From contig OZ287694.1 of the NCBI GenBank assembly GCA_965649825.1, positions 991,197 to 1,055,196 on the forward strand: 64,000 nt of DNA, read 5' to 3'. This document shows, piece after piece, positions 30,456-64,000 of the stretch (position 1 is the stretch's first letter; each line of letters opens with the position of its first letter). Source of the stretch: Penicillus capitatus (Eukaryota > Plantae > Chlorophyta). A program made the translations under genes and the position numbers. The notes beneath the pieces were generated by a model that made no database searches, was not told the origin of the DNA, and worked only from the letters and a program-made list of their open reading frames with translations.

Positions 30456-30526
30456 GTCTGCCTGTCTGCCTGTCATCTCTTGTCACAGATCCACTTGTCG
30501 ATCGCAGATTTCGCTCGGTGCTTTAA

Positions 30527-32834: not shown

Positions 32835-33109
32835 AAACCTCTGCTTTTTTGTTTCCCTGATCTCCTCTTCTTTGTTGAGGGTCAGTTTTTTCGCATTAAG
32901 ACGATGATGCAGGTGCATTCTTGTGCCAATCTCACTCTATCGACTGTAGCATCTTGGGATGTATGTGTCCATACAGTACGGTCGATCGTTTCGAGCACAG
33001 AGGGGTGCATACAGAGTCACCAATTTCATGACCCCGGCGCGCAATGCGTCGGTTGGTTGGAATTGTCACGTCTTGTCTACGGTATCCATACGGTAGGTAG
33101 GTCGTGTCC

Positions 33110-35616: not shown

Positions 35617-36057
35617 CTTGAATGCACATCTCCAGTAATGGGAACATTATGTCGGCATTTAAGACAAGGCGCTTTACATCATTGAGTTTACCTTGCTTGT
35701 CTATTTGAGCGATGTGGACCTGGATCAGAAGATGTGGAGGGCAGTGGTCGAGCCCGTCACATCATCTTGACGACAAAACTTTTGACAAACGCGACGATAG
35801 ACTGCTTGCTACGCGACGCGTGGCCAAAGATTACCTAATAGGTTTCGAGAAAGGATAAGTGTGGTCGCGAGCAGATAAAAGGGGAAGGAACGCAGGAGCG
35901 CCGTCGATTGCTTTGCAAAACGCGTTTGGATTTTACAGCTCATCACTTTGACCTCCATCACAACTTTTCCTTATCGATTGCTGTCTCCGACAGTTGATTC
36001 ACTCTGTCCATTTCCGGCGACAACCCTTCATCCAACACCGGCGTCGTTATCCCAGAC

Positions 36058-41279: not shown

Positions 41280-41646
41280 GACGGACGACTCCCGCCAAAA
41301 TCTGTGACAGAAAGAACGGCGACGTCAGTGACGACATGAGCTCATTGCGGACGTCCGTCGCATCATTGTCGTGGACATTGGAGACGGTGAATGCAACGCC
41401 GACTGTCAGTCCACGCACTGCCGGGCGCTTGACGCCGGAACTCGGCCTGCAAAGTCCTCAGTACGCGAACTGCATCCAGCAGTACGAAATCAGCCCCAGA
41501 GGTTCGGCTCTTGTCCTACCGAAACATGAAGTTCTGTATGGGTGTTGCAGGCAATGAGCCGGGGCAGATCGAAAGTCTAGGACCCGCTGAAGCGAGAGGC
41601 CTTTCCACAAAATGCACGAGCAATCGATCTTTTCAACATGTCTGGT

Positions 41647-43148: not shown

Positions 43149-43906
43149 GGCAATCAAGGAGGAGAGAGCTGTTGCGATCGAATGGCACGATTAGCTGTAA
43201 AATGCGTTTGAATACCTATGCTGAATGCACGTCGGCAAACAAACACGGCGAAAATTGCATCTGCTTTGATTTTAAGCAACCGTATCTCCTAGGTTCTCGT
43301 GGCGATGTGACTGTCTCGTGGAAAGGGGTCCTACCTTTCGAGGGGCACTCGATGTCTTTTCACAGAGCCCTTTGGGATTTCGAGGGGCGCTTTTCCTTGG
43401 CTCTCGTTTGTCGCTGACTCATCCTGCCCAGGGGTCATCTCACTATCCGGGTATTTGACAGAGAACTCGAACCATTCGATACTTTCTCCGAACGCTTGTT
43501 CTTTCTTTCTTTCTCGCGACGTATCCGGTCGAGACGCAGCCGCTGCCACATCTTCATGTGCGATTCCCATCTGAGCCTCTGTCAGATGCTCACGCTGTTC
43601 TAGGCGGCCTTAGCCGAAGACGTGCCGTACAGTTCAGCCTGGCACCTTATGGCGCAACAACTCGCGCGGTCAGAGACGCCACGGAAATACCGCTTGGCCG
43701 CGCGACTGTTGAGGAGAATGGCACCGACGTACACTCAGATCCCCGCCGCGCCCTTCGACGGTCCTCCAGTCGTGCTGAGCACGGACGGACTTTGAGAGCG
43801 GTAAGAATAGGGTGGCTCATAGTTGATGATAAGTGGTATGGATGCAGGATCTACGTTCAGCTCGGTGGCCAATCAGTGTGAAAGGCTACCTGTCTTTGTT
43901 CTACAG

Positions 43907-44415
43907 CAGAACCGTCCGAAGCCATGCCAACCGAAGCCACTGTGGTCATTCAAGGGCATCACACACTCCACCGAGCCACGTCGATGTTCCTCCGGCGCCA
44001 GAATCGTCCGAAGCCACACCAGCCGAAGCCACTGTGGTCGCTCCAGAGCATCACACAGTCCATCGAGCCCAATCGATGTTCCTCCGGCACCAGAATCGTC
44101 TGAAGTTACGCCGGCCGAAGCCCGATCTTTTGCTCCGGAGTCCTTTAGAAGGTTTGTCACTCCAATGCCCCAATACCGACGAAGCCATATACTGACCTTT
44201 AGGTGCCCTGACTCTACACCAGAATCGTCCGAAGCCATGCCAGCCGAAGCCACTGTGGTCACTCCAGAGCATCAAAAGGCTCCATCGTGCCCCATCGATG
44301 ATCCCCTGACGCCAGTATTGTCCGAAACCATGCCAACTGAAGCTGAAGATGAATTCGTCAAATCAATGAACAGCAGTCCATCGAGCCCCATCGATGATCC
44401 CCTGGCGCCAGAATG
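43907..44415 (+). repeat. Imperfect coding tandem repeats (PAPESSE-x-TPAEA-TVV / SSPIDDPL)
   Basis: ccagaatcgtc(c/t)gaag...ccgaagcc recurs about five times; fewer copies in the duplicate at 61975-62295. Confidence 0.85.
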
Positions 44416-44595
44416 ATTGACGGAGCCATCCAGACCGAAGCGGATGTCAATCACCTCTCGTGCAAGAAGCAAAATCGAGCCAGATCCCATCGATGGATCT
44501 GTGAAGAGGTCACCTGCCTGTCAGCTCGCATCTCCTGTAGAAGAGGAGACGCCTACGACGCACGAAGACAGCCAGAGCATCCTTGGCAAGAGGCC

Positions 44596-44720
44596 TGTAC
44601 ATGAGTCTGTCGATGATCTGCCTTTGATGCAGATCATCGCAGACCTTGTACATAGCTACACCCGTGTGCATGAGTCTGTCGATGATCTGCCTTTGATGCA
44701 GATCATCACAGACCTGCACA
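44596..44720. repeat. Hairpin pair A (two ~57-nt inverted-repeat units, period 69)
   Basis: tgtacatgagtctgtcgatgatctgc-ctttgat-gcagatcatcgcagaccttgtaca; second unit bounded by tgtgca...tgcaca. Confidence 0.92.
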
Positions 44721-44799
44721 TGGAGGCTGATCAACGAGCCATAGCTACACATCTGTGCATGAGTCTTCCGAAGCTCTGCCAGTCGAAGCAGTGCAACGA

Positions 44800-46135
44800 G
44801 GTCCTGCACATGAAGACAACTCGATTGTTCTCATGCATCGATGCAGCATTGAATCGAACATGGCGAGCTATGGAGCTGGACGGAGTGTTGCCAAAGAGCA
44901 AACGTTGTGCTCGAGAACTCCACAGTCTTACCAAACCGTGCAGGCAACCTCGGTGGAGGCATTTACAGTCATGGCGCCACATTCTGTACAAGAGACGTCA
45001 CTTTTTAGAATAACTCCGCGGGTGACCAAGGGGGAGCGTTGTTTGGAGACCAGATGAGTGCCTTGACAATCGAAGAATCGATCATCAACGGCAGTGGATC
45101 CAGATACGGAGCTGGCATCTTTGGCCGTGTGAACAGCAGTGTGACGATCCGTCTCAGCGAAATGCAACACAATCTGGCGACTGAAGCTGGAGGTCGAGTC
45201 CATTCGGAGAATTCAGTCGTGAACGTGCGTCAGAGCAGCTTCTCGAGAAACAAAGCATCCATTGGTGGTTCGTTGTTGCTCGCGCATTCAAATCTGCAAG
45301 TGGACAACGCCAGCTTTTTGCACGACGAGGCCACACAATCTGGAGGGTCGATGGCCTTGATGCAGAACAGTTCAGAGCGGTGATCGATGTGTTCGTCAAG
45401 AGCTGTACGGCGAGGACGGGAGGCGGTATAACACTTTCTGGATCGAATATGACATCTTCTGAACTGTGGATCTCCGCTTGCCACGCTGAGGTTAAAGGCG
45501 GCGGCGTCTTCGCAGACAGATCATCGAGATTCCTGTCATCCAGCTCTTCGTTCAGCGACAATGTCGCTGGAGAACATGGCGACGGCATCGCCTTCGAATC
45601 GGACGTGCCGCAGAATCTGGCACTGCAGCTGAACGAATGTGCATTCAATTACAACAGAGCTGATCTAGGAGGTGCGTTCAACGACCTGCGATCATCCATT
45701 CTGAATACCCACGTGTGCAGGTGCTGTCCACGTGTCTACTGGATGCGGACCGAGAAGCTGTTCTCGAACCAATGCTTCGTGCACATTCGTCGCCGTAACT
45801 GGCTGCCGTCTCTTGGGAAACAGCGCCGACGTTGCAGGTGGCGGCGTATTTGTTCAAGATGCCAACATCTTGCGCTACTCATGTGGCAGCAAGAAGACAA
45901 ACGTTCCACCAGAGCTGTACTCGAACAAGACCCTCCAGAAACTCGACACCTTCCGTCCAAATCGCGAAGCGTGTTCCGATTGGGAATCAAACGATGCCCA
46001 TCGCTACGGTCCGATTCTTGCGTCCTACGCCCAGTCCACTCGGGCAGTCATCGAGAACCCAGAGAGTCCAAACGAAGAGGCACGCTTCAAAGATTATCGA
46101 GCCGCTGTTCGCAATCACAGAAGTGGAGATCACCT
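44800..46135 (+). pseudogene. Fragment of a Pmp-type beta-helix gene (paralogue of the 51-54k gene), frameshifted, intron retained
   Basis: GAGIFG...NLATEAGGRVHS...FSRNKASIGGSL...ALQLNECAFNYNRADLGG|intron|AVHVSTGC; same intron position as at ~53925. Confidence 0.8.
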
Positions 46136-46215
46136 GCCTGCCAGCTCGAATCTCCTGTCGAAGAGGAGACATTTCCGACGCACGAAGACCATCAGACCAT
46201 CCTTGGCAAGAGGCC

Positions 46216-46364
46216 TGTACATGAGTCTGTCGATGATCTGCCTTTGATGCAGATCATCGCAGACCTTGTACATAGCTATATCCAACGAGCCATAGCTATA
46301 CCCATGTGCATGAGTCTGTCGATGGTCTGCCGTTGATGCAGATCATCACAGACCTTGTACATGG
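46216..46364. repeat. Hairpin pair B (period 89)
   Basis: Same unit as pair A; second unit ccatgtgca...tgtacatgg. Confidence 0.92.
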
Positions 46365-47452
46365 AGACAACCCAACAAGCCAGAGAATGACGTCCCTACC
46401 CAGTCGTCTTCATCATCTGACACCCCTGGAACAATTGCATTCATGAATCCGTCACCTTCAGGTTCTGGAGAAAATGCACCGATGGACCCAATGGCTCGTC
46501 GGAAACACGAATCCTCTCCCCTCAAGCTGGACAGGCCACCAATCGAATCATGTCGGAGACGATGACGGCGATCTCATGCACAGTCTCATTGCCTTCGCCA
46601 TGTTCCAAGATGATGGACAAATAGTTTCAGAAGATTTCGTTCGGCAGCAATCTCTTCTTCTGGATTGCTACAGAAGCGCTCGAGACCTCAAGGATCGACT
46701 GCCGCTTGACAAACCTGTTGGAATGAGGCCGCCAAGATCCCTCAGCAACCCCCAGACAATGCATGGACGGGCAAGATTTTCCTCCATGACGACCAAATCG
46801 TCAATGCCACTGCAGAATGTCCTGTGACATCACCTCCTCGACTCATGATCGAATCAAGAGTTTCTACGGCATGCGTGTCCAAAAGGGCCGAAAAACCAGA
46901 CATCGAGGAGATGGAGCATTACTTCTTCCTTATCACTCCCGCTGCGCCCAATGGCCCCTTCAGCGAACTATTGAGCAATCTCAAAGAATATCGAACCGCT
47001 GGTGTTGTGCAACTCGAGGAGCTCAACATTACTCTGTATTTCGTTCCTGCTTCGGAATCGAGGTTTAGACAATTGAGTGACATAGGGGATCCAAAGAACG
47101 CCCTCGTGTGTTTTTTGACTGTGACATCATGATATGAGATGTTGCTGCTGTGTGTTAAACATGTTGTCTTTGCAGTGACAGCTGTGTATAAGCATCGTCC
47201 ATTGTTCATCGATTTTCAACTCGGCACGTGCGTTACGCGACATGTTGAGCGACAGCGTTGCGGCGAGAGTTATCGCCGGAATCGTACTACAAGGAGAACA
47301 ACGCAAGAGTGTAGGTGGTGCACAAAGCAGTGAACTCTGGTTCAGGTGATGGATCTCTCGATGCGTGTATTGTCCTCTGGATCTAGAAGCCTTCTTTGAT
47401 CGCCACTGCGTCTGCGATTGTGATTACGATCACATCCTTTTCTGCGTCGTTC

Positions 47453-47677
47453 GATCGGATGTCCCCGTCGCTTTCTGCAAAGACAAGAGCCTGTTCTCGT
47501 GTTCTGTCATCTCCCGTGACAACTCTTCCCACTCCTGTCGCTACTCCCTTGTCCTTCTCTCGGACATCGACCTCTTCATTCCTGCCTTCTTTGTCTTAGA
47601 CTCAGGCTGTCACCTCAGTTTGACGACCTCTGTCCTCTCCTGCTATTCCTTTTTCAAAAGTCGCAGCTGAGCAAGGC
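47453..47677 (-). pseudogene. Duplicated internal fragment of SMC1 (source 40266-40491, including intron sequence)
   Basis: Near-colinear match gatc(a/g)gatgtc(t/c)ccgtcgctttctgca...gcagctgagcaaggc. Confidence 0.9.
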
Positions 47678-48123
47678 CGCCAAAGAGGAACGGCAAGTGA
47701 CTCTCTCTGCCATTGAATCTGTAGACCGGCAGAGACGAAACGGCTTAAAGCACATATGGTTCAGTCGACATTCATAAAGTCACCCTGGCCGATACGCTTC
47801 TATACCAGCGTTTGGACCGAGATTTCGTACTATACGGTCGAAGGAGGCCTATGTTGTGGGAGATAGGGACGACGCCGTCGCGAAACGTCCATCTGGTGAA
47901 CCAGGGATTGTTTCAACATAGCGGAACTGATTACTAGATTGTTCGATGACAAGACGTTCATCCATACAATCGCCATTAGGTGCAACTTGAGATACAAAAA
48001 AGAGAGAATTCTCGACCAGCTCTTGCTCGAGCTGAACTGGTCGAATTCTTTAGACGCACAACTCAAAATGCGAAATAGAAGTCATCATGAACACTAAACG
48101 AGAACTTGGAAAATGCTTGCTCC

Positions 48124-48681
48124 TCATCTGCCATGGGGCATGTCCGGCGATGCTTTGGCCGATGCCGTTGCAGAAACTTGGATGCTGCCGCCAGTGTCTT
48201 TCTTCTGAATACTTTCCTGCGCACGGAACTCGGCCTTGTCTTCTTCTGTTGCTCGGTAGTCTTCAAGAGAAACTCCAGGCGGAAGCTGAGGGATAGTGAC
48301 ACCCCTTGGAATCTCTTCGAAAAAAATGGCGTTCGGTTTGAGTTTGAATGGCACTTTCGCTTTGAGAAGAGCATCGACGACAGCGGCATCGTTCTGATTG
48401 CAAACCGAGAATCGTCTTCTTATGGCCATTTGCACGTCTTCCGATGCCTCGCATGTTTGACTCACATTCTTTTGCGGAAGACATTCAGCCATCGCCAGTA
48501 ACGTTCCTCCATCGCCGGTGGAGGTCAGTGCCGATGCCGAACCGGATGCTGCCCCAGAAGTAACTACTTCAGCGACGGCAAGTTTCATGGCGACAACGGG
48601 TAGGGGAGGGCAGGCGATACGGTAGATCCAGTACAAGAGGTGTCTTTGCGGTTTTCCAAACACCGTCGCAGCGTCTCTCAT
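48124..48681 (-). CDS. Hypothetical protein
   Basis: Open frame with protein-like C-terminal half (AAVVDALLKAKVPFKLKPNAIFFEEIPRGVTIPQLPPGVSLEDYRATEEDKAEFRAQE); start and possible extra exons uncertain. Confidence 0.5.
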   Translation of the reverse strand: MRDAATVFGKPQRHLLYWIYRIACPPLPVVAMKLAVAEVVTSGAASGSASALTSTGDGGTLLAMAECLPQKNVSQTCEASEDVQMAIRRRFSVCNQNDAAVVDALLKAKVPFKLKPNAIFFEEIPRGVTIPQLPPGVSLEDYRATEEDKAEFRAQESIQKKDTGGSIQVSATASAKASPDMPHGR

Positions 48682-49398
48682 CGCAGAAAGATTCGCAGCC
48701 CCATCGTCGGCAAAAGGACGCGTCGCTAAAGAACACGCGAGTGAGCGACACTTAAAGTGGAATCTTTTTAAGAACCGGCACCTGTTCCGTAGGCAAAACA
48801 GAGAACGGCCATCTGCCACAGAGAGTGTTCAGACATCTTCGCCGATTGGCATCGACAGACTTACGAGACAGTAGAGGAGTCTAATGGAAGAAGAGCTCGC
48901 CATGGTAGTCGAACGGATAGGGTATTTTCCTTCGTTCGTCTCCAGGGAGTTTCGAGTCTGTTTTTTCGCAAGAGGACTTTGCGTTGGCGTCGATGCGCAT
49001 GGCCGGCTAAATAGTCGAGAGACCTTCGCGTTTGTTCATCTCAGATTCATGCCGCGTTCTGCTGAACTCTGAAATTCAGCCGTTTTTCCGTCGTACGCGA
49101 AATTGTCTGTCGGCTGCCACAAATCGCCAGCTGTTGATTGCGCGATCGAAATGGCACACAGGATGCCGAATGATGATGATGATGAGCTTAATCTGTTGAG
49201 CAGTGAAGTCTTTAGAGGCGTGAGATGGTCAGGAACTTAGCTTACCTCGTTGACAGAGTGGCTGTTGCTTCTTGCCTCCATTGCTAACACCTTGTGCTCA
49301 CAGACCTGCTACCTCAATGCACTGTTCGATCGTTTAGTCTTGTCAGACCGTTGCTTGAATAACTTACTGAATGCCGGAACGATTTTTGGGCCATAGAA

Positions 49399-50285
49399 CT
49401 ACACTGCTACCCTATTGAATCCCTCCGCCTCAGCGGGGCAGAGAAAAGAACCAAAGATTCTCCTCATCTTAAACAATGATTCGGCGAACGCCTTGAAGCT
49501 CACTGAATGATTTGATGCCTTTCGCTGCCGAATCGGCCAGAATGGAGAGTGCTCCTTTGATCCGAATGCCGTGTCATGGGATATCTTCTCGTCGTCCACA
49601 CCCCGCACAACATCAATGGGCATCATGCCAAACAGCCTGCCTTGTAAGCAATCATCGCGAATGCGTTTGACACCTGCATTCTGTAGCCAGTCAGGCTCTT
49701 GTTCTGGTTGCATGTGACCCATGGGCCATCTGAGAAAAGCAATGAGGCATGAAAAACAACGCACACCTAAAACGGAACCGACAACCATTCTCAACGCAAA
49801 GAATTCGTGGAAGAACGCAACTGCCAAAACAAAATCGACGCGGACTGATGAGCCGACTTCAGAAGATAAGAGATTCGGCGCTTCGGAGACGATGCATCCA
49901 ACAACACGCCGTTGCTCAACGCTCTCGTTTTCCCGTCGTCGTCCCATGTCACGCGACGACGCACTTCGAGGGCTTTATACTGGGCATCGGCGGAGAATCC
50001 ACTCCGCGTGAAAACAAACCGCCACCGTAGACGACGGGGATGCCCGCTTCTGACCGACTCCGCAGAATCCATCGTCGCTTCTCCGGCCTTTCTTCGAGCA
50101 GCAATGGTACAGGGTCGGTGCCTGTCAGCTTCTATCTTCTGATCTCCTGAACGCATCTTTGGTCCACTTATCACAGCTTCATCATGCCTCATCAGCGGCC
50201 GTCTGCCACGCGGCGCATTATTTATACCGACTGCAGGCACTGCAGTTTTCAAACGAAGAGACAACGAGGCGTTATATGCTTTCAA
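49399..50285 (-). CDS. Possible two-exon hypothetical protein
   Basis: Protein-like segments RRLRWRFVFTRSGFSADAQYKALEVRRRVTWDDDGK and PDWLQNAGVKRIRDDCLQGRLFGMMPIDVV separated by a pyrimidine-rich GT-AG stretch. Confidence 0.35.
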
Positions 50286-50838
50286 AAACAGCAGACTCTG
50301 TGGGAAAGCCAGTTACGTTGCCTCGTCTGTTAAGCATTAACCGAGAAACACGTTCGGTCATGAACCGCCTGGCCGGGCGTTCGTCGAAGCGCTTCGCGCT
50401 GATTCTCGCAGTCTTCGCTCTTTTGCTCAAAGTGCACTGCGCCTTGGAGAACATGGACAGAACCAGCGATGTTTTATCGATGCCGAAACGCTCTGCGGGT
50501 ATGCCGCTCTCGACGGTGTGCCGACCTACGATAGATACTTCGTATACGGCGAATATCTTTCCGTACTTATTCGCCTTCGTCGTCGATCATTCTTGCAAGC
50601 GGCAGTGCAAGACAAGAGCATTTTCTAGGGCCCATTCGATCTCCCGTTTCGCCATGGTCGGCAAAGGAGGCACATTTCGAACACGACGCCCAAGTACTCT
50701 GCGTTTCGTCACCATGTGTGCTGTCGTATGAGATGCGATGCATTGCTAGACGCGTGAGGACACTCGTGGTCTTCTGCAAGAGACGCGCCGACGTTCACGA
50801 ACCGAAAGTAGCTCTCCAGCGTTTTCCATCCTCACTGT

Positions 50839-53800
50839 ATGACCCCGTACATTTCAGTTGCGGTCCCGGAATGTCGACTCGAGCGACAAGAGATATCCGA
50901 GTTGTTGGACGCGGCGACCCGAACGTGGACGATCGATAATGCTGCCCTGGAAAGGATGTCCAATGACATCAGTGCCGTCGTCAACTGCACGGCAAAGGAC
51001 GATGTCGTTCTTCTTCGCGTCGAAAGGGACATGCGATTTCCCGCTCGTGTGTTCGTTCCCTGGAATCTAACGTTGACATCCTACATCGAGAACGCCCAGA
51101 TGGAAGACGGCGTTCTCCCTCGGTCAGATGTCAAACTCGAATCCGTTGTCCGTCGAACGCCGGCGCCTTTGAGATCGGGTGATCACGCGTCTCGACTCGG
51201 TCTGTCGTACAAAGCATGGCTTTTGCAGGTCGCCGAGTGTCGCTCTTGCCAACCTCGTCTTCCAAGGGTGTGACCTAGAGGCCTCAGATGCATCCATCAT
51301 CAGAATCGCCAGCCAATGCGCTTCGGATGACGATGGACAAGGAGTGATCAAGTTGCACCACGTGACCTTCCGACGCAACACACTGAATGGATCCAAAGGT
51401 CTCTCGGCTACCCAGCCATCGTGCCCCTCTGTGGAAATGGTCGATGTTGTCTTCTTGGGCAATGCCTGTGGCGATCGGTGCTTTGCCGCACTTGCCATGC
51501 AGAATGTCCTGAACGGCATGGTCCTCCAGAGAAACAGACGGCTGTCTGACGGCGACTCGCCGATCGCGTTGATGTCGGCGCCGTCTGGATCCTCGACCAC
51601 CGTCTCCGGTCTGGTCGCAAGGTCCAATGAATTCTCGATTCTTCGCGCTGTGGAAAGCAACGTCGACATAGCAGACGCCGACATCGAAAAGAGTTCCAGA
51701 GATCCTCCCTTTGTGTTCGATCGTGCTGTGTCCGTCGTTGTCACCGACAGCTCCATTCGCAGAAATTCTGTCTCCCATTCCGGCGGTGCCATTCTCGCAA
51801 ATGCCACCGAGCTGCTCAGTATCTCCCGCTGCATCTTTGAGGGAAACGTCGCAGAGAGCGGTGCTGCCATCGCCTCCATCGATGGTAATTTGACGATCAG
51901 CAACTGCTCCTTCCACCACAACATTGCGAAGACGGATGCTGGAGCACTCCATCTGTCAAACGGTCGTTTGGAACTGCGCGCCTCCGTCTTTGAGAGCAAC
52001 AATGCTACCGGGAACGGAGGCGCAGTCTTCCTCCGAGAAAGCCGCCCTTCAACATTCTCCGAAGTGCAATGTCGCAACAACACGGCTGGAGATGGTGGGT
52101 GTCTGTCAGCGTCGGCCGCCAGGGAGCTCATCATCGAGAACTCCGCATTCGAAAACAATACGGCGACCAACGGAGGCGCCATTCGCTGTGATCGCATGTC
52201 TCTCGGCATGATTGCGAACTCGGTGATGAATAGGAACGTGGCTCTCGGCAAAGGCGGCGGCATCTCGTTGGTCGCATCTCCCAGAATGGAGATCCGCAAT
52301 TGCTCTCTGAATAACAATTCTGCCGAAGCGGGCGGTGGCCTCGACAGCCGATCGTCGCGAGACGTCATCGTAAATCGATGCACCTTCTCTGGCAATTCGG
52401 CTTCGCTCAATGGAGGCGGAGCATGGATCTTCGAACAGAGCAGCGTCCTTGTACAAGCATCGAACTGGACGATGAACCGCGCCGCGAGTAAAGGCGGCGG
52501 AATCGGCGTGGAGGAATCAAATCTCACGGCGCAGTCTTCGACCGTATCCCACAACACAGCTCAAGAAGGATCCGGAGTGAGAACCGAATTTGGAGATGTT
52601 GATCTGAATCAGGTCGCCTTGATCGGAAACCGTGCGTCGGCGTCAGGGGGCGGAATGACGATCCAGCACGGAAGAGCGACGATCGTAGACTGTCACATCG
52701 CACAGAACATTGCCAATGTCTTCGCCGGTGGACTCAATATCGCCAAGGCTCCCAGGGTCATCCAGAACACGACCTTCATTGAGAACAGCGCCCTCAACAA
52801 CCGTGGCGGTGGTCTGGCTTGTTTTGACAGCAATATGTCGATCGCAGATTCAGAATTCCGAGCAAACAAGGCCCACAGTAGTGGCGGCGCGTTTCATATT
52901 GTTTTCACTATGTTTGTCGCAGCAGAGAGGCTCATCATAAGAGATAATCAATGTACAATAGACGGCGGCGGAATCGGAATCGCTGAAAGGAGTGGACTCA
53001 ATATCTCCGACTCCACGATCCAGAACAACACCGCAGCACAGGGCGGTGCTATCTTCTGTCTCAACTCGACCGTCCATGCAACTGACTGCAACATCCATTC
53101 GAATCGTGCGACAAATGGAGGAGGGATTTTTGTCACCAAAGGTTCGAGGTTCTTCCTCGAGAACTCGACTTCCATCTCCAACAAGGCTCAGTCGATCGGT
53201 GGAGCGATAACGAGCTTCGGTGGTAGTACGACACGGATCAAGGCGGTGACGTTCTCAGACAACGAAGCACAAGGCAGTGGAGGATGTGCGCATGCCTAAG
53301 AATCGAGTGTCTTCGTGATAACAGATGCACGTATTGTTAGCGGTCGTGCGCACCAGGGTGGAGGGATCCATGCCCAATCAAACTCAGCAATCGCCCTCTA
53401 TGATAGCATCATCCGTAACAACACAGCGACAAAAGAGGGAGGCGGTTTGCTTCTGGATAGCTCTGAAGGGAATGTGAACGAGACGATCTTCGAGGGAAAT
53501 GTGGCGTCGATCGGAGGATCCATCATTATGAAGAATTCAAGCCTGCAACTAACGAAGTCTGTTCTCGAATATGATAGGGCCACTCTGGCTGGCGGGTCCA
53601 TTGCCGCGAATCAGAACAACTCGTTAATTATCCTGAAGACATCGCTTTTAAACACCAAAACGAAAAATGGCGGAAGCATTTGGCTTTCTGGGTCGACTCT
53701 CAATGCTAATGCGCTCAAGGTCTCTAATTGCGAGGCGAAGAAGGCAGGTGGGGCCATTTTTGCAAATGCCTCTTCCATTGTACTGTGTGCCAATTGCACC

Positions 53801-54483
53801 TTCGACAAAAACAGGGCTGGAAAAAAAAGGGGAGCGATTGCCTTTCATTTTCTCGGAGCCCCGCTATCCCGCGCTGCAGCTGAACGACTGCACGTTCAAC
53901 GAAAACAATGCCAGTATTGGTGGTATAGTAATTGTCCGAAAGCAAACAATTCCTAACAATTATCATGCTATAGGTGCAGTGCACGTTGCCACTCATCGTC
54001 GTCGAGAGGGTTGCGCGAATTCAGGGGATCCCTGCACCTTTGTGGCAGTGACAGGCAGCAGGTTTTCGAGGAACAAGGCGAAGACGTCAGGGGGTGCCAT
54101 CTTCCTAAAGGATCCAACAGTCCTACGTTACTCTTGCTCTCCCCAAGTCACAGAAGCCCCTCCAGCGATCGATGCGACAGACGTTTTAGAAGAATCAAAC
54201 GCGCTGGAATCGGCCAAGGATATCTGTCCAGAGTGGTCCACAAACGAGGCTGGCCTATACGGCCCAAACATCGCCTCGTCTGCCAGATCCGTCAGGGGAT
54301 TCACAGTCGACAGCGATGCAATGAACAACGAGAAGCCGGTCAAGAACAACGAACTTGTTTCCAAGAATCACCGAAGTGGCGCCTCCCTGCCAACGCTTCT
54401 CGTCGAGGTACTGGATGGGTATGGACAGAGTCCTGCGCTCGGCGAAGGCGACGCGTTCGTCCAGGCAACCATGCATTCTCTCG
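50839..54483 (+). pseudogene. Pmp-like (GGA(I/L)...FxxN) parallel beta-helix protein gene, disabled and 3'-truncated
   Basis: Many GGAI/GGGI...FxxN repeats over 51179-53850; frameshift at ~51133, in-frame TAA 53297-53299, frameshift ~53845; interrupted at 54484; 5' exons probably extend to ~50650 or further. Confidence 0.82.
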
Positions 54484-54812
54484 AACTGCGGATTCAAAAG
54501 CTTCGGGCGAAGTGGCTTCGCCGACGATCCGAACAGATGCTCGTCGCCGCAGCCATTGAGCGTGAGAGGACAGCGAAGCCGTAGAGCGCTGAGTAGAAGG
54601 AGACGACGAGACGCGCAAGGAAACGCGTGCATGGGCGAGAGGAGCCAAAGAGGAAACACCGATGCAGCAGGATGAAGGCGCCACGGCGATCAGGGAGGAG
54701 ACAGCTGCTGCGATCGAATGGCGCGATTGGCTGCAAAAGCGTTTGGATACCGATGCTGAATGCACGTCGGCGAACAAACATGGAGAAGAATGCATTTGTT
54801 TGATATTTAAGC
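54484..54812 (-). pseudogene. Duplicated HCF244 5' flank plus transit-peptide coding region (source 42948-43277)
   Basis: aactgcgg(g/a)ttcaaaagcttcgggcgaag...tttaagc colinear with the source; start codon ATG changed to GTG. Confidence 0.92.
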
Positions 54813-57360
54813 GACTATTTGTACGTTTGTTTGTTCGTTCTTTCTTAGACTGCGAACTGAGTTTCTTGCGAACTCCTGCGACCTTGCGCGCGCTCGCCTT
54901 TTTACGATGGATACCGATTCCCACGGTGAACGTAAGCGTTCACCGAAGCCTCCGAGTCAGCTGGCCAATCGCCCGCGACGCAATCCCATCGAGACACCAC
55001 CGCCGCTGCATCTGCGACGCCTTCACGGCTTGACAGCGGATGCCTGTGCTGCCATATAGGCCGGAGCTCGATGCAAAATCATCGAAGATAGAAGAGCTAA
55101 GGAGTTGAGACATGAGACAGAAGGGCTTTTGAAGAGGTCAATCCGCTCCGGCATCGAGCCAGGATCCAGTCTTCTTTGAGATCACTCCGGGCAACAGTCC
55201 CTTCCCTCGACGGGGCCTGTGCCTTCTACCCCTCAAATCCCTGCTGCAATTCCCGAGAATCCTCCAGTCGTGCTGAGCACGAATTACAAGCGCCGTAGGT
55301 GTAGAAAGGCTCATTGTCCATGCTAAGTGGGTAACGGTTGCAGAATCTACATCCTGTTTGGTGGCTGATGAGTATGGACATGTCCTCTGGTTCGTGTCTC
55401 CGCCCGGAAACCTGGGAAATGACGGAGTCAGTGCTGCCTGTAAACAGTACGGAAGAGTTTCCAGAGTCATCTCTCCTGAAGTCTCGCTCGCCAAAGCTCT
55501 CGTTATGTTCGAATCCACAAAGTTTGGAGCAGTGTTGTCCGATCTGTCACATCTCATGTACCATTTCTAGAGAGGCCCACAAGTGCTACCAAGGACTCCT
55601 GGAGAATCCAGACTACGCATCCGAACGCCTGGCTTACATGCTGGTTCCTTCTGTGCGGCACATGAGGGAAGGGCGCTATTCCGCCTTGTTGTGGATGGAT
55701 GGATCGCGCACCTACTCGACCATCCCTCACGTGACCAAATACTTTGACAGTGCTGGCCACTGTGCTCCTGAACACAGCATCGAAGTCGAGGACTCTATAA
55801 GAGAAGGCGCCCCGATCTGATTACCGACGCTCATTCTTCAAAGACTGATCTGTCTCCGGAATTGTTGTTCGAAGCTCCGAAGATCGAGAAGATGAAGTTG
55901 TGTCTGCGAGTCCCTCAGCCTTCTCTCGGGAATCTCGATCCTCGCCATTCTCGGAGAAAGAGAACGAGGAAGGATGCGTTCGCATCGAGATCGGATCTTC
56001 CTCCCCATGAAGAAGAGACAACCCAGGAACGCCTGTGGCGCCGAGACCTCTGTCCTTGTCTGCTACGGACGCGTGCGATGCATCAACGGAAGATACTGCT
56101 GGTGACACTGCAGACGGGCAAGATCATAGAAAATCCAAAGAATCCATAACTCCGGACTCCCATACAAGTCATGCGGCGTCTGAGGACAGAAACACGAACA
56201 CGACAACCCAAAGTACAGCGAACTTGTCGTGTACCCACGGTGGAAATTGCTTCCTCATTATAGAAGAGGATTCCGTTAGTGAAGAATCTCTGCCGAAGCC
56301 AGAAGACAACCCCCACCCTAGACAAACATCAAGTCCTATAGAAGACATTCCTACTATGTCTTCAACAGAGTTGCCAACTGAAGCGGAGCAACATCAACCA
56401 GAAGATGTAGAAGATCTCAGTCCAAGCCTCAGCGACGACGTTCCTGCCGAGTCTTCGACAGTCGCGCCAGCTGAAGTGAAGCATCAGCAAGCTGAAAATA
56501 AAGAAGTGCTGCTTCAAGCCCTCGCAAAGGCGTCGCTCGTGAGCCTTTAGCGGTTGCGCCAAATGGTGTAGATCAACAGCAAACTGCAGAAGACTACAAC
56601 AAATCAAGTTCAGTCGAGGAGTTTAGACACGAGTCATTAGAAGCTCTGCAAATGGATGCGGCGAAGGAACAGTCTGTGCATGAAGAGGCATGCATCATCA
56701 GGCTAAAGGGAAGACGCTCCTACTGAGTCTTCAACAACTATGCCAGCAGATCTGGAGCAGAACAAACTAGTAGAAGCAACAACAAATTAAGTCCCAGAGA
56801 AGACCCTACACAGGTGTCTGTTGAAGCCCTGCCAGATGTTGCGGAACAGCATCAGTGTGTAGACGAAGATGTATGGCGAAGTCACAGAGAAGGCGTTGCT
56901 GTTGATCCTTGGACTGCCATGACGATAGATGCAGTTGAAGAGCAAGCTGGACGTGAAGATGTCTGGCAAGGTCATGGAGAAGGCGTTTCTACCGGACGTT
57001 TAGCGACTATGATGATGGGTGCGGAAGAGTGGCAAGCTGTAGATGAAGAAGCAGCCAATTCAACACTCAGAGAAGTCCATCATGCTGAGACTTTGACGCA
57101 CATCCGCCCATCCTGATTCCACTGATGATGACTTACCAGACTACGATGATCCAAACAAAGTTGAGTTTGGCACAGCGGACTGTGGGCGAATGGGTGTTCG
57201 GTCTGTTAGGACCGAGGGGCGTCACGAGAGGCATGGGCGCTTCGAGGCCGTTAGTGGAGACGAATAGGACGGGTATTTCTACAGGACGATCAGCACATCG
57301 TTGTATAGTTAAACGTCCTGTCATTCTACAGTGACGTACGTCTCTTGATCTAACAGGTCA

Positions 57361-57660
57361 GACATGACGTGACATCTACCGCCCTATAAATGGGCGCATG
57401 GGGCGCATGAGATGTTTAATGATTCTGTTTCGTGGTGCTGCCGCGTGGGCGCGCTGCGCGCCCGCCTCCGCTCTCGGGCCGCACTCGCGCCATCCGTCTT
57501 CCGCTGCGGCGCCTCGGCGCGATTGGCCGACGTCTGGTTTCGGAGCGTTTTACGCTCTTCATTTTGACTGCGGCAAGCGCAGTGCGAGAGCCGGTCCGTG
57601 ACAGATTAGCTGGAGACCTCAAACCTGGTCGACTCCGAGGTTGACCGAGGAGGACGCGAT
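57361..57660 (+). promoter_or_regulatory. GC/CpG-rich segment with TATAAA, promoter-like, embedded in F2
   Basis: ccgccctataaatgggcg at ~57379-57396 followed by a very GC-rich tract containing gggcgcgc-t-gcgcgccc. Confidence 0.35.
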
Positions 57661-58105
57661 TCCCGTCGAGCAGAGAAAAGGTTTTCTGTGGCTGTGGCGA
57701 GGTCCTACGTGGACGCCACCTTCGGCTGGTGCATGAGTTCAACCGTCAGGCGGTCCGACGATGCAAGTCTTTGCTGTCGCGCGAGGCGAACTTTTGCCAC
57801 GGACGTGAACCAGACAGTGGTTCTTCTGTCGAAAAGCAGACGTTGCACGAGAGAGACACGGCTTGAGCGGGTTAACCCAGAACTCCATGTGGTACTGGAA
57901 AATCTGCGAGCTTTCGAACACGTGATGATTGACGGATCTGGGCAGACCGAAGCGGACGCCAATCGCCTCTCGTGCACGAAGAAATCGAGCCAGATCCCGT
58001 CGATGGATCTGTGAACAGATCTCCTGCCTGCCAACTCGAATCTCCTGTCGAAGAGGAGACATTTCCGATGCATGAAGACAACCAGACCATGCTTGGCAAG
58101 AGGCC

Positions 58106-58253
58106 TGTACATGAGTCTGTGATGATCTGCCTTCGATGCAGATCATCGCAGACCTTGTACATAGCTATATCCAACGAGCCATAGCTATACCCATGTGCAT
58201 GAGTCTGTTGATGGTCTGCTGTTTGATGCAGATCATCACAGACCTGCACATGG
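58106..58253. repeat. Hairpin pair C
   Basis: Units 58106-58161 and 58191-58253 (ccatgtgca...tgcacatgg). Confidence 0.92.
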
Positions 58254-58899
58254 AGGCTCTGAACAAGCCAGAGAATGACGTCCCTATCCGACTCACCTTC
58301 CTCGTCTCAAGCCCTGGAACAATTGCATCCATAAATCCGTCAGGTCCTTCAAGTTCCAGAGAAACTGCACCGATGGACCCAATGGCTAGTCGGAAACACG
58401 AATCCTCTCCCCTCAAGCTGGACAGGCCACCAATCGAATCATGTCGGAGAGGATGAGGGTGATCTTAAATGCAATATTATTATTGCCTTCTCCGTGTTCC
58501 AAGATGATGGACTGGGAGATCCAGAAGCTTCATTCGACAGCAATCTCGCCTTCTGGATGGTTGCAGAGACGCCCGAGACCTCGAGGATTGGCTACCGGTT
58601 GATAAACCTGCTGGAATGACACCGCCAAGCATTCCGCAGCAACCCCCAGACGATGCATAGACCGGCAGAATTTTCCTCCATGAGAACGAAGTCTCCGATG
58701 CCACTGCAGAATGTCCTGTTGCATTACCTCCTCGACTCGCGATCGAGTCGAGAGTTCCCATGGCAACGTGTCCAGAATGGCTGAAAATCCAGCCATCGAA
58801 GAAATGGACCATTACTTGCTCCATGTTGCTCCCGCTGCTCCCAATCACCCCTTCTGCGAACTACAGAGAGATCCCAGAGAACAGCAGTCCATTAAGCCT

Positions 58900-60022
58900 C
58901 ACCGATAATTCTGTGACAGAATCGTCTGAAGCCATCCAGACCGAAGCGGAATGACAATCGCCTCTCTTGTACATGAAGAAATCGAGCCAGACCCCATCGA
59001 CGGATCTGAGAACATATCACCGACTTGCCAGCTCGCATCTCCTGTCGAAGAGGATACGCCTACGTCGCATGAAGACAACCAGACCATGCTTGGCAAGAGG
59101 CCTGTACATGAGTCTGTCGATGGTCTGCCGTTGATGCAGATCATCGCAGACCTTGTACATAGCTATATCCAACGAGCCATAGCTATACCCATGTGCATGA
59201 GTCTGTCGATGGTCTGCCGTTGATGCAGATCATCACAGACCTTGTACATGGAGACAACCCAACAAGCCAGAGAATGACGTCCCTACCCAGTCGTCTTCAT
59301 CATCTGACACCCCTGGAACAATTGCATTCATGAATCCGTCAGGTCCTTCAGGTTCTGGAGAAAATGCACCGATGGACCCAATGGCTCCTCGAAAACACGA
59401 ATCCTCTCCCCTCAAGCTGGACAGGCCATCAACTGAATCATGTCGAAGACGATGACGGCGATCTCATGCACAGTCTCATTGCCTTCGCCATGTTCCAAGA
59501 TGATGGACAAATAGTTTCAGAAGATTTCGTTCGGCAGCAATCTCTTCTTCTGGATTGCTACAGAAGCGCTCGAGACCTCAAGGATCGACTGCCGCTTGAC
59601 AAACCTGCTGGAATGAGGCCGCCAAGGTCCCTCAGCAACCCCCAGACAATGCATGGACGGGCAAGATTTTCCTCCATGACGACCAAATCGTCAATGCCAC
59701 TGCAGAATGTCCAGTTGCATTACCTCCTCGACTCACGATCGAGTCCAGAATTCCCATGACATTCGTGTCCATAATGGCCGAAAAACCAGACATCGAGGAG
59801 ATGGAGCATTACTTCTTTTTTATCACTTCCGCTGCGCCCAATCGCCCACTCAGCGAACTACTGAGTGATCTTAGAGTCACACAAACCGCTGGTGTTGTGC
59901 AACTCGAGGAGCTCAACATTACTCTGTATTTCGTTCCTGCTTCGGAATCGAGGTTTAGACAGTTGAGTGACATAGGGGATCCAAAGAACGCCCTCGCCTG
60001 TTTCTTAACTGTGACATCATGA
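58900..60022 (+). pseudogene. Spen/FPA-like 3' duplicate F3 (linker plus complete SPOC-like domain)
   Basis: Colinear with 44425-44595 and 46140-47132; SPOC open from TGG 59654 to TGA 60022; shares the upstream 1-nt shift with F1. Confidence 0.75.
59103..59251. repeat. Hairpin pair D
   Basis: Units 59103-59159 and 59189-59251. Confidence 0.92.
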
Positions 60023-60232
60023 TATGAGATGTTGCTGCTGTGTGTTAAACATATTGTCTTTGCTGTGACAGCTGTGTATAAGAATCATCCATTGTCAATC
60101 GATTTTAAACTCGGCACGTTTGTTAAGCGCCTATGTTGAGCGACAGCGTTGCGGCGAGAGTTATCGCTAAAATCTTACAACAAGGAGAACAACGCAAGAG
60201 TGTAGGTGGTGCACAAAGCAGTGAACTCTGGT

Positions 60233-61079
60233 TCAGGTAATGGAACTCTCGATGCGTGTATTGTCCTCTGGATCTAGAAGCCTTCTTTGATCGCCACTGC
60301 GTCTGCGATTGTGATTACGATCACACATTTTTCTGCGTCGTCCAACCAGATCTCCGTCGCAGATGGGCAAAGAGGTCTCTCGCTTGTCATCGTGCGTCCC
60401 TTGACCAAACAACGTCAACACCGACCTCCATGGCCAATGGACCATCTCTGGTTGCCGAGATGTTATGCAAAAGTACTGAGGTCCGCAAGACCTATGCATC
60501 GTTGCGAGACATGTCATTCCTAGGGTTTGACTTCGTATTTCCAGTAAAGATCCCGCAGGTATTGAGCGTTCCGCGGAGAGTCGCGCGAAACTGTTATGAT
60601 CTAGAGAAGAAAAGAGACAACGTGCCTTGAATCCAATCTGCATTGTCAGGTCTTCCTGCTTAATTGTCTGTTTCTTGAGGGAGCGATATGCGAACTCCCT
60701 TGTCTCAATGTTGCCTTGTTCTGTGTAAAATGCGTTGCTAGAGAGAGCGTAGCTCTCTTTGGTCTGCATCCTGTACTGTCTCTTTAAAGAGTCTGTTCCC
60801 TATGCGTGTGGTGGCTTTCAGATTCAAAGCTTTAACATTCGACTGTTTCGACAATGTCCTTGCAGACAGCAAAGTTCTGTCAGCACTGAAGATAAGGCGT
60901 TCGCTGCATATCATTGAGTTCACAGTCCTTTCCTCTTTGAGCGATGTGGAAATGGATCAAACGATGCGGAGGGCAGTGGTCGGGCTTAGTCACATGTTCT
61001 TGGTGACAAAACCATTGACAAACGCGTCTATATTCTTTAGCTGAGAGGGGAAGCCAAGTCGAAGGACTGGAGCTGTTGA
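60233..61079 (-). pseudogene. Remnant of an unidentified gene convergent with the SPOC copies
   Basis: Broken protein-like frames (FSADRTLLSARTLSKQSNVKALNLKATTRIGNRLFKE; FYTEQGNIETREFAYRSLKKQ; SRDSPRNAQYLRDLYWKYEVK); its 3' end is also copied at ~47340-47450. Confidence 0.35.
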
Positions 61080-61438
61080 CCGTGCGTCGCGTGGCCATTG
61101 CCTCGGTCATAAAGGAGATCTTCGAGGCGCCCTCGAAGATGTCCCATCTCTACGCCCAGGACGAAACTGATGGCATCCATGATATTCGATTTGCTAGAGC
61201 CGTTGGGGGGCCTACGATCGCAGCGAACGAGCGGAAGGGTCCGATGCTCACGGCGCCGCCATAAAACTCGAAGTTGTGCCGTTCGAGCAGATGGATGCGA
61301 CCACCTCGCTGTGTCATGACGGACGGCTTTCGCCAAAGGCTGCGACAGAGAGAACGGCGACGTCAGTGACGACATGAGCTTATTGTGGACGTCCGTCGCA
61401 TCATTGTCGTGGACATTAGAGACGGTGAATGCAACGCC
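61080..61438 (-). pseudogene. Duplicated SMC1 5' flank and N-terminus (source 41044-41400), frameshifted in the P-loop
   Basis: ATG 61317 MTQRGGRIHLLERHNFEFYGGAVSIGPFRSFAAIVGP, then +2 nt (ggccccccaacggc vs ggccctaacggc). Confidence 0.92.
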
Positions 61439-62473
61439 AGAGAGCCTTCTGAGATCTCGAGGGGCGCTTTTCCTTGGCTCTCGTTCGTCGCTGACTCATC
61501 CTGCCCAGGGGTCACCTCACTATCCGGGTATTTGACAGCGAACTCGAACCATTCGATGCTTTCTCCGAACGCTTGTTCTTTCTTTCTTTCTCGCGACGTA
61601 TCCGGTCGAGACGCAGCCGCTGCCACATCTTCATGTGCGATTCCCATCTGAGCCTCTGTCAGATGCTCACGCTGTTCTAGGCGGCCTTAGCCGAAGACGT
61701 GCCGCACAGTTCAGCCTGGCACCCTATGGTGCAACAACGCGCGGTCAGAGACGCCTTAGAAAAAGCGCTTGGCCGCGCGGCTGTCGAGGAAAATGGCCGA
61801 GGTACCCTCAGATCCCTGCCGCGCCCTTCGACGGTCCTCCAGTCGTGCGGAGCACGGACTTTGAGAAAGGTAAGAATACGATGGCTCATGGTGAATGATT
61901 AATGGTAATATTTGCAGGATCTACGTTCAGCTTGGTAGCTGATCAGTGTGGAATGCTACCTGCCCTGGTTCTGCAGCTGAGTCATTCGAAGCCATTCCGG
62001 CCGAAGTTGAAAATGCCCCTCAACTGCGCCAGCTCCACCAGTTAAGCACCATCAATGGTCCTGCACCAGAATCGTCTGAAGTTACGCCAGCCGAAGCCCA
62101 ACCTTTTGCTCCGGAGTCCTTTAGAAGGTTTGTCACTCCAATGCCCCAATACCGACGAAGCCATATACTGACCTTTAGGTGCCCTGATTCTACACCAGAA
62201 TCGTCCGAAGCCATGCCAACCGAAGCCACTATGGTCACTCCAGAGCATCACAAGACTCCATCGAGCCCCATCGATGATCCCCTGGCGCCAGAATGATTGA
62301 CGGAGCTAGGCAGACCGAAGCGGATGCCAATCACCTCATGTGCACGAAGAAATCGAGCCAGATCCCATCGATGGATCTGTGAAGAGATCACCTGCCTGCC
62401 AGCTCGCATCTCCTATCGAAGACCCGACACCTACGACGCACGAAGACCATCAGAGCATCTTTGGCAAGAGGCC

Positions 62474-62599
62474 TGTACATGAGTCTGTCGATGATCTGCC
62501 GTTTGATGCAGATCATCGCAGACCTTGTACATAGCTACACCCGTGTGCATGAGTCTGTCGATGATCTGCCTTTGATGCAGATCATCGCAGACCTGCACA
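62474..62599. repeat. Hairpin pair E
   Basis: Units 62474-62531 and 62544-62599 (tgtgca...tgcaca). Confidence 0.92.
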
Positions 62600-62689
62600 T
62601 GGAGGCTGCTCAACGAGATATAGCTACGCCAATGTGCATGAGTCTTCCGAAGCTCTGCCAGTCGAAGCAGTGCAACGAGGTCCTGCACT

Positions 62690-64000
62690 TGAAGACAACT
62701 CGACTGTTTTCATGCATCAATGCAGCATTGGATCGAACATGGCGAGCAATGGAGCAGGACTGAGTGTCTACTAAAGAGCAAACGTTGTGTTCGAGAACTC
62801 CACAGTCTTATCCAACCGTGCAGGCAACCTCGGTGGATGCATTTACAGTCATGGCTCCACATTCAGTACAAGAAAGGTCACTTTTCGGAATAACTCCGCG
62901 GGTGAACAAGGGCGAGCGTTGTTTGGAGACCAGATGAGTGTCTTGACAATCGCAGAATCGATCATTAACGGCAATAGATCCAGATACGGAGCTGGCATCT
63001 TTGGCCGTGTGAACAGCAGTGTGACGATCCGTCTCAGCGAAATGCAACACAATCTGGCGACTGAAGCTGGAGGTGGAGTCCATTCGGAGAATTCGGTCGT
63101 GAACGTCAGTCAGAGCAGCTTCTCGAGAAACAAAGCATCCATTGGTGGTTCGTTGTCGCTCGCACATTCAAATCTGCAAGTGGACAACGCCAGCTTTTTG
63201 CACGACGAGGCCACACAATCTGGAGGGTCGATGGCCTTGATGCAGAACAGTTCAGCAGCGGTGATCGATGTGTTCGTCAAGAGCTGTACGGCGAGGACGG
63301 GAGGCGGAATAACACTTTCTGGATCGAATATGACATCATCTGAACTGTGGATCTCCGCGTGCCGCGCTGAAGTTAAAGGCGGCGGCGTCTTCGCAAACTG
63401 ATCATCGATTCCTGTCATCCAGCTCTTCGTTCAGCGACAATGACGCTGGAGAACATGGCGGCGGCATCGCCTTCGAATCGGACGTGCCGCAGAATCTGGC
63501 ACTCCAGCTGAACGAATGTGCATTCAATTACAACAGAGCTGATCTAGGAGGTGTGTTTAACCATTTGCGATCATCCATTCTGAATACCCACGTGTGCAGG
63601 TGCTGTCCATGTCTCTACTGGATGCGGACCGAGAAGCTGTTCCCGGACCAATGCTTCGTGCACATTCGTCGCCGTAACTGGCTGCGGTCTCTTGGGAAAC
63701 AGCGCCGACGTTGCAGGTGGCGCCATCTTTGTGCAAGATGCCAATATCTTGCGCCATTCATGTGGCAGCAAGAAGACAAGCGTCCCACCAGAGCTGCACT
63801 CGAACAAGACCCTCCAGAAACTCGACACCTTCTGTCCAAATCGCGAAACATGTTCCGATTGGGAATCAAACAATGCCCATCTCTACGGTCCGATTCTTGC
63901 GTCCTACGCCCAGTCCACTCGGGCATTCATCAAGAACCCAGAGAATCCAAACGAAGAGGCACGCTTCAAAGATCATCGAGTCGTTGTTCGCAATCACAGA
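62690..64000 (+). pseudogene. Second copy of the Pmp beta-helix fragment
   Basis: EDNSTVFMHQCSIGSNMASNGAGLSVY*RANVVFENSTVLSNRAGNLGGCIYS...GGGVFAN*; stops and frameshifts differ from the 45k copy. Confidence 0.82.

Follow-up and report, generated by a model that had tools for sequence, protein, structure and literature searches.

Tandem imperfect hairpins with constrained stems in a duplicated gene module of the green alga Penicillus capitatus

A stretch of 64,000 nucleotides from the genome of Penicillus capitatus (contig OZ287694.1, positions 991,197 to 1,055,196; the window, hereafter) carries short hairpin-forming units, arranged in tandem, within a recurrent gene module. We find that these units are a real, structured element under stem-level constraint, and one that is apparently undescribed. 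The stems are constrained in their base pairing and in the sequence of their arms, not in a protein product, because the arms are conserved, the loop is free to vary, compensatory changes are present, and the reading frame is not retained. The host gene family is lineage-specific, young, and partly decayed, and the hairpin is a passenger of its segmental duplication. A role of the units as hairpins in the sense-strand RNA, be it in intronic compaction, as a processing site, or as a small-RNA precursor, is what we tentatively propose, at a confidence that falls somewhat short of an even chance.

Structure of the units and constraint on their stems

All ten hairpins listed in a sequence-only reading of the window were located, and all lie on the + strand (Table 1), although the second units of pairs B, C, and D begin 3 nt downstream of the starts first given (46302, 58191, and 59189), and two decayed third units, which follow pairs A and E and fold at about -18.6 kcal/mol, had been missed. 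Each strong unit is an imperfect palindrome of 55-58 nt with an imperfect stem of 23-25 bp, a perfect core of 10-11 bp, and a loop of 7-8 nt, in agreement with the fold proposed earlier (a perfect 10-bp core, an imperfect stem of about 25 bp, and a loop of this size). From the base upward, the stem starts with a terminal helix of 6 bp (TGTRCA/TGYACA); small internal loops follow at positions 7 and 9, then a helix of 5 bp, a bulge of one base at position 15, and finally the core, which ends in the loop. The substitutions described in the earlier reading were also recovered: the terminal TGTACA...TGTACA of the first units appears as TGTGCA...TGCACA in A2, C2, and E2; B2 and D2 carry the G-U intermediate TGTGCA...TGTACA; the change of GATGATC to GATGGTC, which gives a G-U pair, is present; and the loops of E1 and C2 show indels. 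In the decayed unit A3, compensatory changes at pairs 14-46 and 21-40 stand alongside several mismatches.

The ten units have predicted folding energies of -30.7 to -34.7 kcal/mol (RNAfold), with z scores of -6.3 to -8.8 relative to shuffled sequences, and when all 60-nt stretches of the 64 kb were folded (mean -11.9, standard deviation 4.4), they occupied the extreme tail, at -31 to -35.6. When no more than one mismatch is allowed, the 10-mer core occurs 27 times, against 9.6 expected, and none of 100 shuffles reached as high a count. No second hairpin family of a comparable kind was found in the 64-kb window. Rfam gave no gathering-level match in the same 64 kb, the only hits being mir-type models with 21-25 bits against cut-offs of 60-90; the units are a structured element, as had been suggested, and lack an Rfam match.

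A comparison of the first unit across 12 loci shows where sequence is free to change. In the upstream 85 nt, 41% of the columns are variable and copies differ pairwise by 12.4%, and the loop is similar, at 38% and 10.1%; in the 5' arm, these values fall to 12% and 3.0%, and in the 3' arm, none of 24 columns varies. Variability in the arms is about a quarter of that in the loop and the flanks (Fisher tests: p = 7e-6 for arms versus flank, 0.03 for arms versus loop, and 1 for loop versus flank). The B-type copies of the surrounding module, described below, show the same tendency, with 2.6-2.8% difference in the hairpins and spacer and 8-16% in the flanks. A more diverged paralogue, locus L003 on another contig, has units that are about 82% identical to those of the window, similar to the 75-81% of the neighbouring open reading frame (ORF); even so, these units form folds of -25 to -32 kcal/mol.

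Among 24 distinct unit sequences, 95.5% of the pair cells are standard pairs, and 7 of the 23 pairs change on both sides: 4-55 (GC/AU), 11-49, 14-46, 16-45 (CG/UA), 18-43 (AU/UA), 19-42 (UA/CG), and 21-40 (AU/GU/CG). The covariation measures were attained by 0-7 of 500 shuffles, and slid controls were near zero; all of these sequences are paralogous to one another, and compensatory changes could also arise by template switching. The covariation noted from the window is real, but the evidence there is thinner than it had seemed, as the window copies alone yield only pairs 4-55 and 16-45 and the stronger evidence comes from L003. The sequence-only reading had set against the element the case in which all copies stem from one recent duplication without covariation: the window copies do come from recent segmental duplications, but covariation is found, mainly through L003. 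The unpaired positions 7, 9, and 15 are retained in all strong copies, those of L003 included.

The coding frame shows no such retention. The upstream open frame (...GKRP) meets a stop inside the block of units at 11 of the 13 loci known to us, and it stays open only through both units of copy A and the three units of copy H. The unit lengths and the spacings (67, 69, 86-89, and 101 nt) are not multiples of three, the units of one locus stand in different phases, and 1-nt indels in the loop are common. Translated, the 3' arm gives LMQIIADLVH for the window but RCRSTQSCTW for L003, and each of the two still pairs with its own 5' arm. The in-frame peptide that the earlier reading saw in the units holds, therefore, at just two loci. 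Rickettsia palindromic elements (RPEs), to which the units had been compared, are dispersed insertions in many unrelated genes, where they stand in frame. The units share with them the presence of palindromic repeats inside ORFs; unlike RPEs, they occur in a eukaryote, in tandem and within a single module, and their frame is not maintained, so the parallel fails.

Two further observations concern the units in the window. The long spacer between units (46266-46297, 58155-58186, and 59153-59184) contains two copies of the self-complementary ATAGCTAT, which, when a pair is folded as RNA, form an additional small hairpin flanked by the two large ones. Over 10.4 kb, the window differs from the European Nucleotide Archive (ENA) record at six positions, all in module C (58134, 58186-58187, 58220, 58301, and 58451), which may reflect uncertain assembly or polishing, or else conversion between alleles within the repeats. 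Given that 58134 and 58220 fall in the loops of C1 and C2, these two loop variants are not secure.

Host module, gene family, and multiplication by duplication

The window lies on a 1.84-Mb contig of ENA assembly ERZ25074695, from which neighbouring and paralogous loci were fetched. Altogether, three contigs of this assembly carry 36 known units, at 13 loci: the 10 strong and 2 decayed units of the window, 3 just past its end, 6 in each of the loci L002, L004, and L005, and 3 in L003. Each hairpin belongs to one unit of a tandem repeat whose period is 69 or 86-89 nt, with 2-3 units per locus, and the full repeat unit is CATAGCTAYACCC-hairpin-TGGAGGCTNNTCAACGAGC. This repeat always lies within a module of about 400 nt in the same orientation, in which some 90-220 nt upstream and about 20 nt downstream are homologous at every locus. 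The modules of the window are 84-97% identical to one another and belong to larger duplications, namely 41044-47460 against 61080-65406 (89-94% identity) and 57925-58873 against 58937-59870 (84%).

An acidic, repeat-rich region precedes the module and a SPOC-like C-terminal ORF follows it; the module is also found in chimeras with fragments of a PMP-type beta-helix gene. The recurrent order is A-type module, PMP-type fragment, B-type module, and SPOC-like ORF, and the two module types diverge about 20 nt past the last unit. An "RRM-SPOC linker" had been proposed as the context of the units. Its SPOC half is weakly recovered: the Pfam matches of the downstream ORF (E = 0.0026 and 0.014) are both under the curated cut-off, a profile search of the PDB matched the SPOC domain of RBM15 at no better than E = 1.3, and the AlphaFold model has a pLDDT of 36 and is unusable. 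No RRM domain was found in any upstream ORF at E <= 1. The more diverged paralogue, L003, carries a 1188-codon acidic-repeat ORF, followed by three hairpins and then by a SPOC-like ORF, and it is apparently the copy nearest to the parent gene. In this most intact paralogue, two TAG codons stand in frame: one (9595-9597) falls within a repeat and interrupts the acidic ORF, and the other (9977-9979) just precedes the SPOC-like ORF. The ratio dN/dS of the flanking ORFs is around 0.6 and hardly differs between frames, and is uninformative on the function of the copies.

A covariance model built from 24 distinct units was searched against 183 kb, including 21 kb of a related genome, and it returned the 36 units and palindromic echoes of them on the opposite strand, with no copy outside the module. 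Pattern scans of JGI metagenome contigs found no units, and protein searches with the hairpin ORF and a SPOC-like profile gave matches only in contigs of the same assembly. The hairpins were multiplied passively by segmental duplication of the module, as is shown by the fact that the 36 units at 13 loci on three contigs share strand and context and there is no other copy in the 183 kb. The hairpin family has no match in a relative with 85% nucleotide identity or elsewhere in the sequences searched and is therefore young. The organism is a eukaryote with mTERF, PHD, SAND, SMC, and Dak genes, and plastid-type genes lie nearby; for the Dak gene, the closest named homologues come from two green algae, Caulerpa (49%) and Bryopsis (43%).

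The genome of the relative with 85% nucleotide identity (L006, from another sample) is collinear with positions 29182-35638 of the window and then with positions 65918-70683 of the extended sequence. The block of about 30.3 kb in between is missing at the syntenic site of the relative, which means either an insertion in the genome studied here or a deletion in the relative. The block contains the SMC gene, PMP-type genes, copies of the SPOC-like gene, and all of the window hairpins; the empty site is at L006 16393-16402, and CAGTAA occurs at both junctions. In the relative, retroelement ORFs (RVT_1, rve, and Exo_endo_phos_2; L006 100-9469) stand directly 5' of a shortened Dak gene, with 398 aa instead of the 607 aa found here.

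The junctions that could be mapped are those of the PMP fusion in B/F (about -87 relative to the repeat), of the C/D tandem duplication (about 58873-58937), and of the two block ends (35638 and 65917). None lies inside a palindrome, and the block ends are at least 1.6 kb from any unit. The breakpoints of duplication homology fall about 87-220 nt upstream, about 20 nt past the last unit, or kilobases away, and at the repeat itself only the number of units (2 or 3) varies. The suggestion that the hairpins are a recombination hub that drives the surrounding shuffling thus found no echo in the positions of the breakpoints.

Table 1. Hairpin units and associated features of the window (positions of the 64,000-nt stretch).
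Feature	Position	Strand	Evidence and remarks
Hairpin A1, first unit, same sequence as B1	44596-44652	+	-32.8 kcal/mol, z -8.0; covariance model 82.6 bits
Hairpin A2, second unit, ends TGTGCA...TGCACA	44665-44720	+	-32.4 kcal/mol; covariance model 83.4 bits
Decayed third unit A3, weak hairpin	44754-44810	+	-18.8 kcal/mol, z -1.9; covariance model 66.5 bits
Hairpin B1	46216-46272	+	-32.8 kcal/mol
Hairpin B2, G-U at pair 4-55	46305-46361	+	-30.7 kcal/mol
Hairpin C1, bulge removed by 1-nt deletion	58106-58161	+	-34.7 kcal/mol; loop base 58134 differs from ENA record
Hairpin C2, 8-nt loop, T-A at pair 16-45	58194-58250	+	-33.6 kcal/mol; loop base 58220 differs from ENA record
Hairpin D1	59103-59159	+	-32.2 kcal/mol
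Hairpin D2, same sequence as B2	59192-59248	+	-30.7 kcal/mol
Hairpin E1, 8-nt loop	62474-62531	+	-33.3 kcal/mol
Hairpin E2	62544-62599	+	-33.9 kcal/mol; top covariance-model score, 86.3 bits
Decayed third unit E3	62633-62689	+	-18.4 kcal/mol
Shared upstream part of module	44377-44595	+	blastn among modules, alignments; counterparts before B1 (from about -87), C1, D1, and E1 (about -180 to -220)
SPOC-like ORF after pair B	46710-47129	+	alignments; paralogue 59600-60019
SPOC-like ORF after pair D	59600-60019	+	Pfam PF07744, E = 0.0026, 18.1 bits (cut-off 25)
PMP-type beta-helix gene fragment between pairs A and B	45009-46135	+	translations; paralogue 62775-64000 after pair E
Block of about 30.3 kb with all window hairpins	35639-64000, on to about 1.9 kb past the window end (L001, the ENA record, about 12297)		missing at the syntenic site of L006

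Several neighbouring features help to describe the region. The most intact PMP-type gene (51173-54584, +) encodes a eukaryotic protein with Chlamydia-PMP-type repeats (PF02415, E = 3e-20), and fragments of it are fused behind A-type modules; matches to Chlam_PMP (PF02415) were obtained at 62787-63401 (E = 1.5e-4) and in this most intact copy, at 51179-54584. In L002 (7733-9850), the PMP-type protein continues with a Cys-rich stretch and a transmembrane tail. At 37188-41279 (-) lies an SMC gene that encodes head, coiled-coil, and hinge domains; a duplicated fragment with the 5' end of this gene and the region upstream of it recurs in the repeated cassettes (61080-61438; L002 12080-12655). A 92-nt tandem repeat directly 5' of the A-type modules (43907-44414 and 62196-62294) resembles the acidic repeats of the L003 gene. 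Outside the window, the cassettes of L002 (record 1263219-1283554) and L005 (1289868-1310119, reversed) are 94-97% identical and inverted, about 27 kb apart on the same contig; each has five strong hairpins and one decayed unit, and they flank ribosomal-protein and EF-Tu genes. L004, on the 31.9-kb contig ctg330239_20x, is 92-94% identical to window positions 40494-52652, including a pair of A-type and B-type hairpins; its coverage is 20x, against 34x on the main contig, and it may represent a haplotig or one more paralogue.

Possible roles and competing explanations

We infer a mechanism that acts through RNA in the sense transcript. The units would behave as RNA hairpins in the transcripts of their host genes, within a non-translated and probably intronic stretch, where they might compact an intron that is over-long for a genome with introns of 35-61 nt or, alternatively, might serve as a cleavage or processing site or as a small-RNA precursor. 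The intron sizes come from the EF-Tu gene of the same genome (L005 13000-15100, - strand), with about ten introns of 35-61 nt of the GT-AG and GC-AG types; one of its junctions fits neither type. Single in-frame stops of all three kinds are common between adjacent long ORFs of the same frame, as expected for tiny introns whose length is a multiple of three. Stop-codon reassignment was considered for these stops and rejected, given that all three codons occur in such places and tiny introns fit better. For instance, the PMP-type gene at 51173-54556 has two TAA stops (53297 and 53954), and a candidate 39-nt intron at about 53283-53321 starts with GTGCGCATG, which resembles the 5' end of the hairpin. 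In the hairpins, GT stands at stem position 2 in all 36 units and AG follows 3-10 nt past the stem, with 57-65 nt from GT to AG. Removal of the whole block, with the first GT and the AG that follows the last unit as its ends, leaves 50 or more open codons at 8 of the 13 loci; the support that this lends is weak, as the copies are related. No targets of putative small RNAs were found in the sequence searched.

A number of observations weigh against a role in sense-strand RNA. The whole-block intron model fails at 5 of the 13 loci, and a model in which units are removed one by one fails the ORF test at most of them. Many copies are pseudogene-like, with frameshifts and in-frame stops, and several of the module copies may be pseudogenes, which makes selection on such copies questionable. 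The hairpin family is young and its compensatory events are few (some 6-7), and the spacer between units is conserved as much as the stems. The + and - strands fold with equal stability (Wilcoxon p = 0.53), and single changes of the G-U type (about 6-8) are roughly balanced by those of the A-C type (4); neither comparison gives a signal for action at the RNA level or on the + strand. Finally, some variants are common to the units of one locus (D1/D2, F1/F3, and A1/A2), which shows that the units are being homogenised as well, by gene conversion or unequal exchange.

A more specific version of the RNA role takes the units for mirtron-like introns, arranged in tandem, that fold into hairpins of pre-miRNA size, in a green alga with a spliceosome able to process introns of 35-61 nt. 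Splicing would then release each 57-60-nt hairpin as a ready substrate for Dicer, with the invariant 3' arm as the guide strand. Mirtrons are hairpin introns of about 56-70 nt whose ends are set by splicing. The units resemble them and pre-miRNAs in being hairpins of about 57-60 nt with an imperfect 23-25-bp stem, a small free loop, and conserved arms, one of them invariant, and also in having GT...AG at the stem base and occurring as tandem clustered units; the Rfam matches to miRNA precursors are generic and below threshold. They differ in that their 3' tails are 4-6 nt instead of 2 nt and in that the host genes are maybe pseudogenes. Each unit taken as its own GT-AG intron was tried and rejected, as it leaves stops or 10-nt micro-exons at most loci. 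We consider the mirtron-like version improbable.

Introns with hairpin-forming ends are known from the introners of Amoebophrya (PMC7789003), the symmetrical stwintrons of Hypoxylaceae (PMC8469720), and the nonconventional introns of euglenids (PMC3935182). Similar to introners and symmetrical introns, the units are short intragenic repeats of the size of host introns, with pairable inverted-repeat ends that bring the flanks together, GT at the 5' base of the stem, and AG soon past the 3' base. Unlike introners, which are dispersed over unrelated gene positions and have been shown by RNA data to be spliced, the units are tandem and found at one homologous position, in one family and its chimeras, and the intron model for single units, as seen above, does not pass the ORF test here.

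The main competitor of the RNA role is that the repeat is a neutral, functionless palindromic minisatellite, whose ability to fold is kept up by template switching, that is, copying from arm to arm, together with conversion or unequal crossing-over between units and loci, and whose loop varies because the centre of a palindrome is hypermutable. Template switching has been reported to yield multibase compensatory changes in quasi-palindromes (PMC8794818), and changes of this kind are seen here: the adjacent pairs 18-43 and 19-42 have changed jointly (GATG...CATC against GTCG...CGAC), and a half-converted state, with GATG in the 5' arm and CGAC in the 3' arm, is present in two lineages, in units F2 and I2. 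The sharing of variants within loci, the variation in unit number between 2 and 3, the absence of strand asymmetry, the many pseudogene-like host copies, and the lineage-specific family also speak for neutrality. Template switching accounts for restored pairing, but not for the persistence of bulges or for arms that vary less than the loop: correction from arm to arm should erase bulges and mismatches, yet those at positions 7, 9, and 15 persist even in L003; conversion tracts should homogenise the 7-nt loop, yet it varies like the flanks, next to a 3' arm that is invariant across the 12 loci; and concerted evolution alone does not reduce divergence in the arms only. On balance, we consider neutrality somewhat less likely than the RNA role, and the alternative to be taken most seriously.

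The other explanations are less probable. A DNA cruciform or hairpin that serves as a hotspot of recombination or breakage and shuffles the nearby gene fragments would suit a region this heavily rearranged, with its PMP, SMC 5'-end, and SPOC-like chimeras, its tandem and dispersed duplicates, and its inverted cassettes 27 kb apart, and it would also suit the varying unit number and the parting of A-type and B-type modules about 20 nt after the last unit. It is, however, improbable that this is what the units do, since the breakpoints that could be mapped are outside the palindromes; moreover, the palindromes known to break are long and perfect, whereas the stems here have 23-25 bp and are imperfect, with their imperfections conserved. 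Still less probable is a translated peptide repeat, HESVDDLPLMQIIADLVH, in a protein linker, similar to an RPE and with incidental palindromy: the frame that runs open through copies A and H agrees with it, and the stops at the other loci, the mixed frames, the loop indels, and the unrelated peptides of the 3' arms do not. The least credible candidate is a miniature mobile palindrome, inserting itself in the manner of a MITE or an RPE, as the earlier reading had offered among its options. The units are short, have terminal inverted repeats, and are present in many copies, but the flanks are homologous and the orientation is the same in 36 of 36 units, there are no pairs of empty and filled sites, and about 0.19 Mb of genome, together with the JGI contigs, gave none outside the module. 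A target-site duplication was sought in the flanks (..AGGCC / TGTACA...TGTACA / TAGCT..) and none was found, TGTACA being itself part of the stem. Helitrons end in a hairpin 10-12 nt upstream of a conserved 3' CTRR terminus and insert between A and T; a Helitron 3' end was rejected here, since CTGA-T follows A2 only, E2, F3, B2, and D2 lack it, and the hairpins are internal to duplicated cassettes.

If the stems are selected, the units would be a compact, lineage-specific structured element with a natural series of strong, half-converted, and decayed copies, and this series could show how hairpins are born and maintained in a genome with ultra-short introns and whether their upkeep is due to selection or to template switching. 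If the units are neutral, they would instead be a clean case of a palindrome that is maintained by mutation and mimics RNA covariation, and thus a warning for the covariation-based discovery of RNAs in paralogous repeats.

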